Below, in pieces: positions 11,907-42,567 of a stretch of DNA of 64,000 nt. Within the stretch, counting starts at the first letter, position 1, and every line of letters begins with the position of its first letter. The notes below the pieces were generated by a model. The model did not search any database and was not told where the DNA came from. It saw nothing but the letters and a program-made list of their open reading frames with translations. Where the stretch lies: sequence record NC_061447.1; one strand, written 5' to 3'. A program made the position numbers and the translations under genes.

Positions 11907-11970
11907 GATTTGTGAAGGGCCTTCAACGAGGGTCCTTTGAAAATCAAACCATGTTCTGAGGAGAACAACA

Positions 11971-39141: not shown

Positions 39142-39194
39142 GCATAAAACTGGACAAAACAGCGGTAGTATCTGAAAGCGTCCTATGATACAAT
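39142..39194 (+). promoter_or_regulatory. Class A promoter
   Basis: GCATAAAACTGGACAAAAC ... TGA-TACAAT at 39189, spacer 32. Confidence 0.85.
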
Positions 39195-40600: not shown

Positions 40601-40741
40601 CAATCAGTTTGGCTCGCCCGTCCAGAAATGCTCACCCCCAATGAGGCGCCCCATCGCAGAGGCGTGACGACGCGGGTCCTTTTTGAAGCGTACTGAGTAG
40701 TGCGCTGCATAAAGTACCTAAAACCAAACAGGAGGCTGTTA

Positions 40742-41155
40742 ATGAAGTTCAACGAAGCAAGTAAAGATGCACAGGTCATTCTCATGGGTGGTGCACTCGC
40801 TGGTGTGATTGAAGTCTTCGGACGCGACGAAGAAGACGAAGGCAAAAAGCTGATCGAAACGGCATTAAGCCAGATAGGTCTGACGTTCGACGAGTTCTGT
40901 GTGCTGATGACAGATATGGCGCCTGAGGTAGAAGTTGAGGTCGAAGCGATTCTCGGTGAGCATAAAGCTGTACGTGTTGCTGATGCAGACGATGACTTCG
41001 ATGATGAAGACCTCGACACTGCGGAAGAACGACCAGGCAATCTCAACGATGACGGCCGTACCGATGAAAACGGTTGGCAGAACCTCGACGAAGGTGAAGA
41101 TGAAGTCTGCTTCTCCTGCCATAAAGAGCATTGCGAATGCAATCGTGTGGGGTAA
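40742..41155 (+). CDS. Acidic hypothetical protein with a C-terminal CxxC..CxC
   Basis: AGGAGG RBS. Confidence 0.75.
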   Translation: MKFNEASKDAQVILMGGALAGVIEVFGRDEEDEGKKLIETALSQIGLTFDEFCVLMTDMAPEVEVEVEAILGEHKAVRVADADDDFDDEDLDTAEERPGNLNDDGRTDENGWQNLDEGEDEVCFSCHKEHCECNRVG

Positions 41156-41159
41156 TCAA

Positions 41160-41375
41160 ATGAGCCGACGTCCTACACAAGATGAAGTGAGCGGCCAGAT
41201 AGCTGCCGCCGAAGAACAACGCTATAATGAGCAAATCGCTCAGTACGACGACTGGACAGACGACGAGCTGGCCGACGCTGTAGAAGCTAACGAGCTTGTG
41301 GACGAAGATGACGACGCAAGCAACTACAGCCGCGAAGCGCTGATTCGAATGCTTCTGGCAGATCGTCGCTTCTAA
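41160..41375 (+). CDS. Small acidic protein with an HeH-like module
   Basis: YDDWTDDELADAVEANEL...YSREALIRMLLADR. Confidence 0.7.
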   Translation: MSRRPTQDEVSGQIAAAEEQRYNEQIAQYDDWTDDELADAVEANELVDEDDDASNYSREALIRMLLADRRF

Positions 41376-41428
41376 GCATAAATCTGGACAAAATGAGGAT
41401 TGTCTCAAAACAGCGTCCGTGATACAAT
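41376..41428 (+). promoter_or_regulatory. Class A promoter
   Basis: GCATAAATCTGGACAAAAT ... TGA-TACAAT at 41423, spacer 32. Confidence 0.85.
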
Positions 41429-41430
41429 AT

Positions 41431-41620
41431 AGAGACAGCGAGACATGTTCTCTCTGTGATGTGCCTATAACGTCTTGACCGTGTGTTTATTTTTTCCCGG
41501 GCACACGGTCCTTTTTAAAGCTGCTTCCTGTGAGGCTGTTTTAAAAAGGGTTCGATACCCTTTGAGCGCGTCGGGCTTTACGCGGTTTCCGCCTGCCGTG
41601 CTCTCATGCTAAACCGCAAA
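41431..41620 (+). ncRNA. Structured RNA or 5' leader with a T-arm mimic and an H-type pseudoknot
   Basis: 9-bp stem 41477-85/41502-10; 10-bp stem 41510-19/41540-49; AAAGGG-TTCGATA-CCCTTT; stem 41564-76/41591-603 whose loop GCGGTTT pairs with AAACCGC at 41611-17. Confidence 0.55.
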
Positions 41621-41630
41621 GGAAATAGAT

Positions 41631-42461
41631 ATGCCTAATACTTCACGCCCTAAGACAGAAGACAAATTCTCCCGCGCTCGCGCCGCTAAGAACTCGCCAA
41701 AGCGCGTTAAAGGCAAAAAGCCTAGCGAGCGTCCTGAGAACGAAGGTGAGAAGAAACGCCCAACACCACGCGGGCCGTCTTCCGCTAAACCACGTCAACT
41801 GCCTCCTGGCTACGGTTACAAATCGAAAGCTACGGGCGAACGTCTCCCGGACACGCAGACGAAAATTCGTGACGAGGAACGCGTGTTCAATCTGGTTCAC
41901 GCAATCTTATCAGCATGGAAGGTTACGACTGACGCGGAAGCGGTTGCTACGGGTATCATCAAAGTGTCTCGTCGTAAGATTGAAGGCGCCTTGCGTGACC
42001 TCAAGAATACGCGCTTCACTAAAATCCCGTCGCTGGTTAACGATATTCTGACCGATATGGACCTCTACAAAGAGTTCGGTCAGTGGGTGTATGTCGAACA
42101 CGATTCTCCTGATTGGATTTTCGTTCGACTGCCTGAAAACAGTACGCAAGTGATTCGTGCTGATATCAGTTCTGATCGTATTGGCGAAACGTCTGCTGCC
42201 GTGACAACCAGAACAGAAGTTCTGCTTGACGGTGCGCACCTCGAAGAAGATGAAGAGGAGATTCCTGAGAACGTCGAGTATGGCGACGAAGAAGAAGAAT
42301 CTGACGAAGAAGAAGAATCTGACGAAGAAGAAGATGATAACGCCGCTGCTGTTGCTAAGATGCGCAAGTATCTGGTAGCTGCGCAAATCATCAAGCCAGA
42401 AGCTGCCGTCAAGCTGTCTGACAATGACGTAGTGAGGTTGTATAGCTACTACCGAGCGTAA
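41631..42461 (+). CDS. Protein with a basic disordered N-terminus, an acidic tract and a C-terminal HeH-like module
   Basis: Lys/Arg/Pro-rich N-terminus; EEEESDEEEESDEEED; MRKYLVAAQIIKPEAAVKLSDNDVVRLY. Confidence 0.85.
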   Translation: MPNTSRPKTEDKFSRARAAKNSPKRVKGKKPSERPENEGEKKRPTPRGPSSAKPRQLPPGYGYKSKATGERLPDTQTKIRDEERVFNLVHAILSAWKVTTDAEAVATGIIKVSRRKIEGALRDLKNTRFTKIPSLVNDILTDMDLYKEFGQWVYVEHDSPDWIFVRLPENSTQVIRADISSDRIGETSAAVTTRTEVLLDGAHLEEDEEEIPENVEYGDEEEESDEEEESDEEEDDNAAAVAKMRKYLVAAQIIKPEAAVKLSDNDVVRLYSYYRA

Positions 42462-42472
42462 GCACTAACGAG

Positions 42473-42499
42473 CGGGGCAGTGAAATATAGCTGCCCTGC
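42473..42499 (+). terminator. Stem-loop (terminator-like)
   Basis: GCGGGGCAG-TGAAATATAG-CTGCCCTGC; no clear U-tract. Confidence 0.5.
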
Positions 42500-42513
42500 T
42501 ATCTGCGAAGTAT

Positions 42514-42567
42514 GCAGAAAACTGGACAAAATCGTGGTTGTTATCTGCCGGCCACCTATGCTATAAT
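42514..42567 (+). promoter_or_regulatory. Class A promoter
   Basis: GCAGAAAACTGGACAAAAT ... TGC-TATAAT at 42562, spacer 33. Confidence 0.85.

Follow-up and report, generated by a model that had tools for sequence, protein, structure and literature searches.

The stretch of DNA analysed here (the window) comprises 64,000 nucleotides (nt) of the sequence record NC_061447.1, and the question it raises concerns the intergenic region at 41376-41630, between the hypothetical genes 00319 (ending at 41375) and 00320 (pEaSNUABM33_00320): does this region encode a structured RNA leader of gene 00320 and, if so, of what kind? A first-pass annotation, made from the sequence alone, had proposed a riboswitch-like or tRNA-mimicking leader with mutually exclusive stems and a pseudoknot touching the ribosome binding site. 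We identified a strand-specific, conserved and structured RNA leader whose stems exceed chance expectation, built of two parts, a terminator-type cassette (module A) followed by a pseudoknotted element adjoining the ribosome binding site (module B). The overall picture that we favour, with a probability of roughly 55 %, is that of a promoter-driven leader of 00320 in which module A would attenuate transcription and module B would set translation initiation. The 2.4 kb around the leader are 100 % identical to the Erwinia phage pEa_SNUABM_33 (263,237 bp, Alexandravirus), related DNA was found in 57 phage records, nearly all of them Erwinia and Dickeya jumbo phages, and all neighbouring genes lie on the plus strand.

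Folding of the plus strand between 41435 and 41640 yielded -71.5 kcal/mol with a z-score of -4.24, and none of 200 shuffled sequences folded as well; the z-score of the minus strand was -1.89. The proposal of a promoter-proximal structured leader is thereby borne out, both by this strand-specific fold and by the pseudoknot adjoining the ribosome binding site. In the partition function (features as named in Table 1) P1 reached pair probabilities of 0.85-0.98, the inner seven pairs of P2 together with P3 at least 0.9, P4 0.39-0.88 and P5 about 0.9, with 0.03-0.54 for the outer five pairs of P2. Conserved G.U pairs were found in several stems, including a U.G pair of P3 in 21 of 24 sequences, one pair of P5 in 25 of 30 and G.U pairs of P2 in 7-10 of 24. 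Because so many G.U pairs, each an A.C mismatch on the opposite strand, are conserved, selection acts on the plus-strand RNA. The 265-nt intergenic region is also better conserved than the flanking genes, with identities of 98.1 % vs 88.3 % in AD1, 92.0 % vs 79.9 % in SNUABM_3 and 85.9 % vs 80.3 % in Alexandra.

Homologues of the leader were gathered from GenBank phages and IMG/VR and, by way of homologues of the downstream protein, from metagenomic assemblies. The collected loci carry L-numbers as labels, among them L002 (pEa_SNUABM_13, MZ475891.1), L004 (Yoloswag), L018 (phB78), L019 (pEa_SNUABM_30) and L058 (contig AAHPOS010000001.1 of GCA_007314735.1). To control for pairing by chance the partner strand of each helix was slid along the alignment. 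Covariation among homologues, which the first-pass annotation had named as a check on its stems, was found in both modules, with double changes at 14 pairs of module A and 17 pairs of module B, a level of covariation reached in none of 500 shuffles of either alignment.

Module B carries the strongest part of this evidence. Its covariance model was built from P4 and P5 only, leaving the pseudoknot out, and was used to align 33 leaders, 30 of them distinct. Among the 30 distinct sequences 90.5 % of the cells are paired, vs 36-51 % when the partner strand is slid, and double changes affect all six pairs of P4, eight of the 13 positions of P5 and three of the seven pairs of the pseudoknot. The P5 stem had been proposed in the first-pass annotation and was recovered with 12 of its 13 positions paired; RNAalifold predicts it as well. 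The H-type pseudoknot between the P5 loop and the stretch ahead of the ribosome binding site had likewise been proposed, and its strands are exact complements (duplex energy -8.5 kcal/mol) that are paired in 99.5 % of cells. Seven complementary versions of it occur, each with seven of seven standard pairs (Table 1), and on the aligned sequences the pseudoknot alone needs at least four separate compensated changes. Its downstream strand ends 1 nt before the AAGGA of the Shine-Dalgarno sequence, correcting the gap of 2 nt given earlier, and 13 nt before the ATG. A GGA follows the pseudoknot strand at a distance of 2-3 nt in 29 of the 30 distinct leaders and at 5 nt in the remaining one. Loop 1 reads TTTAC in all 30, and at its junction end the pseudoknot has three U-A pairs that are equally invariant; judging from position and strand polarity, base triples could form between these pairs and the three U of loop 1.

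The phylogenetic distribution of module B follows that of the gene. It precedes orthologues of 00320 in Alexandravirus, Rivsvirus, Yoloswagvirus, Salmondvirus and several metagenomic contigs, and the most distant proteins linked to it share 30-36 % identity with the window protein. Searches of the 64-kb window with the covariance model identified module B exactly once and no further copies. Certain leaders (the JA11 type, L063, L065 and L066) have no module A, and in these P4 begins about 8-10 nt after an Alexandra-like promoter motif, so that P4 would be the 5′-terminal hairpin of the mRNA, the promoter being assigned there by likeness only. Module B reads as the ancestral 5′ untranslated region (5′ UTR) of gene 00320, occurring in every phage that has the gene, a single time in each of the genome stretches covered. 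A separate observation concerns the Alexandraviruses phB78 and pEa_SNUABM_30 (about 1001-1370 of both loci), which are without 00320, P5 and the pseudoknot and retain the promoter, module A and a P4 in which both loop and stem are starting to diverge; the next promoter follows directly after this altered P4. The loss of gene 00320 from these two phages suggests that it is dispensable.

Module A combines P1, a U-run and the hairpin P2/P3. In a plain MAFFT alignment of 24 sequences 96.0 % of its cells are paired, vs 33-62 % with the partner strand slid. P1 is the 9-bp stem of the first-pass annotation, which is indeed perfect; its strands differ between relatives (Table 1), with double changes in nine of nine pairs and 96.8 % of cells paired. 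The second stem described there, of 10 bp, is perfect too; at its full length it has 12 pairs, and within it lies a further hairpin of 5 bp, P3, that had been overlooked. Together P2 and P3 form a hairpin of 17-18 bp with an isolated free energy (dG) of -18.5, in which 95.6 % of cells are paired and five pairs show double changes. P1 is followed by a C and then by TTTTT, a U-run that is invariant across the relatives save for AD1, which has four U. As a G+C-rich hairpin of 9-12 pairs with an adjoining U-run, P1 has the sequence features of an intrinsic terminator.

A covariance model of P1-P2-P3 scored 98 bits at module A and about 22 bits on the minus strand, and it identified further, non-orthologous copies after genes in the relatives (Table 1). 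These share a layout of a hairpin, CC-U5-AAAG and a short hairpin, then CUUUAAAAAG; the outer and inner hairpins vary freely, and the A/U helix is nearly invariant even among non-orthologous copies. Since non-orthologous copies recur at the 3′ ends of genes, we regard module A as a reused terminator-type cassette. In the 00320 leader it is placed after the promoter, unlike the copies that lie between the stop codon of 00320 orthologues and the next promoter. Of the five copies in Yoloswag three are arranged in tandem upstream of the leader, and one of these precedes the promoter. Downstream of 00320 itself (42461-42521) we observed a hairpin, GGGCAG...CTGCCC, that no U-run follows; the types SNUABM_13, SNUABM_34 and L064 have the cassette there instead.

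The first-pass annotation had presented the 10-bp stem and the T-arm-like hairpin P4 as mutually exclusive. This holds for the outer five pairs of P2, which compete with P4, and fails for the inner seven pairs and P3, which coexist with it; the competition stops short of the ribosome binding site. Concerted changes in SNUABM_35 (41477, 41510, 41549, 41559) were considered as proof of a P1/P2/P4 switch, a case weakened by L058, which has the P4 change without that at 41510 and so shows that the changes need not be linked.

The -10 hexamer that had been noticed upstream of the stems belongs to a predicted promoter, TTGTCT and TACAAT at a spacing of 17 nt, the spacer ending in TG (extended -10), with a predicted transcript start at about 41435. 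The promoter is conserved among the relatives. Its upstream word occurs again at 42522 and, with one change, at 39150, and the full pattern of word, -35 and -10 is found six times on the plus strand of the window and not at all on the minus strand, vs 0.34 times in shuffled sequences. Each of the six promoters of this class has a hairpin within a few bases downstream, and at 39151 and 26148 the hairpin is accompanied by a U-run. At the predicted 5′ end of the transcript a hairpin, P0, is predicted in the window and in most Alexandra-type relatives, and by eye the SNUABM_13, SNUABM_5 and phB78 types have a 5′ hairpin of another sequence class. The PaBG/Lu11/Alexandra phage group encodes a sigma-70-like factor (PMC7412058) and lacks a multisubunit RNA polymerase of its own, and Alexandra appears solely as a comparison phage in a study on multisubunit RNA polymerases and phage nuclei (PMC10299810); for these reasons host-type promoters and intrinsic terminators are plausible here.

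Table 1 Features of the 00320 leader and related elements; positions refer to the window unless a collected locus is named
Feature	Position	Strand	Details
Gene pEaSNUABM33_00320	41631..42461	+	hypothetical protein, 276 aa; record annotation
Predicted sigma-70-type promoter	41384..41428	+	consensus scan; upstream word CTGGACAAAAT 41384-94, -35 TTGTCT 41400-05, -10 TACAAT 41423-28
Promoter class with CTGGACAAAAT-like word	7473, 26148, 39151, 41385, 42523, 59421	+	pattern scan of window
P0, hairpin at predicted transcript 5′ end	41435..41457	+	minimum free energy fold; 9 positions, one mismatch
Module A, terminator-type cassette	41473..41552	+	P1, U-run 41512-16, P2, P3
P1	41477-85/41502-10	+	GACCGTGTG/CACACGGTC; 9 perfect pairs (12 counting three G.U); isolated dG -16.2
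P2	41510-21/41538-49	+	core CCTTTTTAAA/TTTAAAAAGG (41510-19/41540-49) perfect; 12 pairs, one G.U
P3	41523-27/41532-36	+	5-bp hairpin enclosed by P2
Module B	41545-41630	+	P4, P5, H-type pseudoknot, Shine-Dalgarno
P4	41545..41563	+	AAAGGG-TTCGATA-CCCTTT; 6 bp, 7-nt loop 41551-57; 41545-49 common with P2
P5	41564-76/41591-603	+	13 positions, 12 paired, one central U.C mismatch, two G.U; 14-nt loop 41577-90
Pseudoknot	41583-89 with 41611-17	+	GCGGTTT with AAACCGC, exact complement; loop 1 41577-82; connecting strand 41604-10
Shine-Dalgarno AAGGA	41619-23	+	read from sequence
Start ATG	41631-33	+	read from sequence
P1 strands, window			GACCGTGTG/CACACGGTC
P1 strands, Alexandra			GACCATGTG/CACATGGTC
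P1 strands, SNUABM_35			AGTCGTGTG/CACACGGCT
P1 strands, SNUABM_13			GACTGTAAG/CTTACAGTC
P1 strands, L054			GACCACATG/CATGTGGTC
Pseudoknot version, window			GCGGTTT/AAACCGC
Pseudoknot version, SNUABM_13			GCGGTTT/AAATCGC
Pseudoknot version, JA13			GGGGTTT/AAATCCC
Pseudoknot version, L063			AGGGTTT/AAACCCT
Pseudoknot version, L065			CGGGTTT/AAACCCG
Pseudoknot version, L066			CTGGTTT/AAACCAG
Pseudoknot version, L059			CGGATTT/AAATCCG
Cassette copies between 00320-orthologue stop codon and next promoter	L002 2528-2600; L005 2529-2601; L064 1600-1675
Cassette copies in Yoloswag (L004), five	1093-1182, 1324-1411, 1453-1543, 2729-2804, 2809-2910
Other cassette copies	L061 516-590; window 11909-11943 (partial), ~40640-40730

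Taken together in the reading that we favour, transcription from the host-type promoter would run into two RNA modules of separate origin. P1 and its U-run would terminate a fraction of the transcripts at a length of about 80 nt, an attenuation that might be relieved by a phage factor, and in the transcripts that read through, P2/P3 would fold and cover the U-run. The pseudoknot of the P5 loop, 1-3 nt before the Shine-Dalgarno sequence, would then most likely set the efficiency with which ribosomes initiate. It could do so by docking on the ribosome or by preventing misfolding and keeping the A-rich start region free, or it could instead be bound by a ribosome-blocking factor. We have high confidence that module B is a real, functional and cis-acting RNA structure of the 5′ UTR, and most likely it would serve translation as an operator or an enhancer. 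The stems, their conservation and strand, their link to this one gene and the recurrence of module A are shown; that P1 terminates transcription, in which direction translation is affected and whether a trans-acting partner takes part are points that we infer.

A number of observations weigh against this picture. The aligned sequences are related, and independent compensatory events are fewer than the cell counts. For module A, a simple terminator scan does not list P1 because its loop is longer than 8 nt (16 nt, or 10 nt counting the three G.U pairs), the U-run is short, with five U and then an A, and a terminator downstream of a promoter is unusually placed. For module B, the connecting strand of 7 nt is short for crossing a stem of 13 positions, and P5 may need to be bent or partly open for the pseudoknot to form. 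The Shine-Dalgarno sequence and start codon lie outside the pseudoknot, and no mechanism of occlusion can be read from the sequence. Finally, a promoter scan of the JA11-type leaders listed no promoter.

An alternative that we consider unlikely, yet deserving of weight, divides the leader into two units. Promoter, P0, a single-stranded spacer and P1 would make a trans-acting small RNA of about 80 nt, and P4, P5 and the pseudoknot would act as a constitutive stabiliser of the read-through or processed mRNA, perhaps after a cut at P2/P3 that would leave P4 at the 5′ end, the position it would have in JA11-type phages. A 5′ hairpin, a spacer and a terminator with a U-run are the typical layout of a small RNA, phB78 and SNUABM_30 keep the promoter-P1 unit in the absence of the gene, P2/P3 is a long hairpin, and the JA11-type P4 lies close to its promoter-like motif, all of which would suit such a division. 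The spacer, however, is moderately conserved and falls into at least two sequence classes, and no target or antisense partner was found in the 64-kb window, where the search for an antisense partner of the P5 loop returned chance-level complements only. For a plain stabiliser, moreover, there would be no need of an invariant loop, nor of a pseudoknot that covaries and keeps its distance from the Shine-Dalgarno sequence.

Quite unlikely, in our judgement, is the more far-reaching possibility that module B represents a new class of ligand- or protein-sensing RNA. Its pseudoknot would be stiffened by three U.A-U triples (41577-79 with 41587-89/41611-13) and its T-loop hairpin seen by host tRNA-modifying enzymes in most lineages; it would time an early DNA-binding-like protein, with the cassette tied to phage antitermination. 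A riboswitch in the stricter sense, in which the pseudoknot and the invariant loop bases form a small-molecule or ion pocket that alters translation, is a doubtful proposition. An H-type pseudoknot directly before a ribosome binding site, with the invariant loop 1 and a UUU/AAA end that would allow base triples, is what such an element might look like, and as it matches no known family it would be a new class. The gene it would control nevertheless encodes an uncharacterised phage protein rather than a metabolic or transport function, the Shine-Dalgarno sequence has no conserved pairing (RNAalifold gives a 2-bp contact only) and there is no conserved 'off' fold, and the element occurs with a single gene in a single phage group.

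The likeness to tRNA emphasised in the first-pass annotation requires closer attention. The T-arm-like sequence is present as described: the loop of P4, TTCGATA, has the exact form of a tRNA T-loop with a G-C closing pair. When the leaders were sorted by a short generic tRNA T-loop pattern, 20 of the 30 distinct leaders, across three genera, showed this form; in the other ten the loop is replaced and the hairpin kept. In the SNUABM_34 group, where the T-loop is replaced, the stem still pairs by way of a change from G-C to U-A, and the T-loop is absent from all leaders without module A, in which the hairpin and pseudoknot persist. The first-pass annotation had itself held that the element is not a tRNA, and in agreement with this ARAGORN identified no tRNA genes in the window and the Rfam tRNA model gave no match at E ≤ 10 over 40800-42300. 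An acceptor-like helix (columns 19-25/121-127 of alignment A4) is paired in 82 % of cells, mostly by invariant weak pairs and with a single double change; of its two outermost pairs one fails in 10 and the other in 15 of the 24 sequences, the window included, and the helix clashes with P1 and P5. A tRNA cloverleaf was thus rejected on the ARAGORN and Rfam results and on the unconserved acceptor-like helix.

In pEa_SNUABM_13 a tRNA-Glu(ttc) of 95 nt is annotated in GenBank at the homologous site (L002 1474-1568, MZ475891.1 241695-241789), spanning P1 to P4 of the leader, and ARAGORN reproduces it. This annotation is most likely a false positive, because no tRNA is called in the near-identical SNUABM_34 leader and the acceptor helix is not conserved.

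A tRNA mimic or tRNA derivative is very improbable. On that account P4, with or without P5, would imitate a T-arm and acceptor and recruit modification enzymes, RNase P or EF-Tu, or would be what is left of a decayed tRNA gene. The exact T-loop, the tRNA-Glu call in pEa_SNUABM_13 and the absence of a spacer between P4 and P5, which could stack like a T-arm on an acceptor stem, are consistent with it. It is opposed by the failure of the acceptor-like helix, its clash with the strongly covarying P1 and P5, the replacement of the loop and the far end of P5, which is closed by a loop and leaves no free 3′ end. Compared across the family, the hairpin P4 is conserved and its tRNA likeness is not, and on this comparison the T-loop cannot be the core mechanism; the tRNA-mimic variant of the earlier proposal is not supported. 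Host enzymes modify tRNA T-arms, and one of them might act on the T-loop, which may still be relevant where a lineage carries it.

A DNA-level element such as a protein-binding or cruciform palindrome, operator or origin is barely credible, for while P2 is an almost perfect AT-rich inverted repeat that is nearly invariant even in non-orthologous copies and the cassette model scores on the minus strand too, the spacing of the P2 arms varies from 14 to 21 nt, the pseudoknot has no meaning at the level of DNA, and the conserved G.U pairs together with a minus strand that folds no better than shuffled sequences led us to reject a DNA palindrome and a minus-strand RNA alike. Two further candidates were rejected. 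Translation of a small protein from the 45-codon open reading frame (ORF) at 41475-41612 (+), or from the coding sequence of Yoloswag gp311 (L004 1458-1655), disagrees with single-base insertions and deletions and compensatory changes that are unlike those of coding sequence, and reading of the aligned leaders gave no conserved -10-like word for a second promoter between module A and P4.

The product of gene 00320 offers few clues to what is being regulated. No Pfam or PHROG family was matched by the 276-aa protein, a sequence profile search of the PDB gave no relative of solved structure, and among 1.8 billion representatives a profile search recovered 20 relatives, all unnamed. In its AlphaFold2 model (mean predicted local distance difference test score, pLDDT, 71) a confidently predicted core (about 81-200) lies between two disordered parts, a basic one at the N-terminus (about 1-75) and an acidic tract (about 203-231), and the C-terminal part is helical. 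Foldseek identified no PDB fold below E 0.2, the weak top matches (E 0.2-0.8) being winged-helix DNA binders, and in BFVD the model matched solely uncharacterised proteins from this phage group, among them several shorter paralogues of the core. No family, solved structure or fold matched in these searches points to RNA binding, which the autoregulation proposed in the first-pass annotation would require. An alignment of the orthologues (A3) displays a well conserved core and, within the disordered basic N-terminal part, an invariant Pro after a nearly invariant Arg-Gly; the C-terminal helical part is present in some lineages and lacking or replaced in others.

Searches for known RNAs support the novelty of the element. 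No relevant Rfam family was found at E ≤ 10 on the window region and none reached the gathering score in four divergent homologous loci. The Rfam check named in the first-pass annotation gave three matches at E ≤ 10, unrelated small RNAs far below thresholds, and the claim of novelty stands. Scans of metagenome and genome collections with a 15-base core pattern gave, among the matches listed, chance matches in all cases examined, and the leader is not described in the literature that mentions these phages. We conclude that the RNA motif is new while its general type, the leader with a pseudoknot at the ribosome binding site, is known; here it is combined with a terminator cassette.

Comparison with established systems places the two modules. 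Lambdoid late and early operons have promoter-proximal intrinsic terminators with partial read-through or antitermination, and the 00320 leader resembles these attenuators in its order of promoter, short structured RNA, hairpin with U-run and then genes; it differs in that no antiterminator or recognition site was identified and in its non-standard second hairpin, P2/P3, which pairs with the U-run. P4 shares with the T-arm of tRNA a 7-nt T-loop closed by G-C on a stem of 5-6 pairs, and lacks an acceptor stem, D arm, anticodon arm and CCA end, its loop moreover being unconserved across the family. SAM-II and preQ1 riboswitches are compact H-type pseudoknots that adjoin the ribosome binding site; their loop 1 is U-rich and their A-U pairs can form triples. 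Module B is similar in its H-type pseudoknot adjoining the ribosome binding site, its invariant U-rich loop 1 and its U-A pairs, and is unlike them in having no Rfam match, an unsequestered Shine-Dalgarno sequence and a non-metabolic gene context. In rpsO and other ribosomal-protein leaders a pseudoknot at the translation start forms a protein-binding operator; the Shine-Dalgarno sequence and start codon of rpsO lie inside the pseudoknot, unlike those of 00320. The pseudoknot operator of Escherichia coli rpsO, which concerns S15, is mentioned alongside that of T4 gene 32 (PMC3014915).

The product of T4 gene 32 begins to bind its own mRNA at a pseudoknot in the leader and from there comes to cover the ribosome binding site (PMC3014915). 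The 00320 leader is likewise a phage 5′ leader with a conserved H-type pseudoknot upstream of an unstructured A-rich ribosome binding region, and its product too combines a basic N-terminal part with an acidic part. The T4 pseudoknot however lies about 67 nt upstream of the start codon (PMC3014915), far more distant than that of 00320, the two share no sequence or Rfam relation, the 00320 product is unlike single-strand binding proteins, and binding of the product to its RNA is hypothetical here. In ColIb-P9 repZ and IncB-IncL/M repA, loop pairing just ahead of the Shine-Dalgarno sequence leaves the initiation region accessible and strongly raises translation (PMC4705826). Module B resembles the ColIb-P9 arrangement in the pairing of a hairpin loop with a short G+C-rich segment directly 5′ of the Shine-Dalgarno sequence. 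In the plasmids, however, a leader peptide has to be translated, the Shine-Dalgarno sequence is weak and masked, the start codon is GUG and an antisense RNA competes for the loop, whereas 00320 has an AUG start, an exposed A-rich site, no antisense partner within the window and no conserved upstream ORF, the 45-codon ORF being broken by insertions and deletions.

L058 is a contig of about 266 kb (266,303 bp) in an assembly of Salmonella enterica serovar Infantis, on which the locus is present together with the complete leader. This Salmonella isolate assembly thus includes the genome of an Alexandra-like jumbo phage, for which an infecting phage, carriage and contamination are alike possible.

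To our knowledge very few regulatory RNAs have been reported from giant phages, and none has been described for the PaBG/Lu11/Alexandra group. The comparative support for the 00320 leader is unusually strong, with about 30 distinct leaders and seven versions of the pseudoknot ahead of one gene in at least four genera, and this makes it a well-defined object for structure determination. The terminator-type cassette is shown to be a reused module of these genomes, and a tRNA-Glu annotation in pEa_SNUABM_13 that is likely false is corrected. The leader may also help to reveal how early gene expression is timed in these phages.

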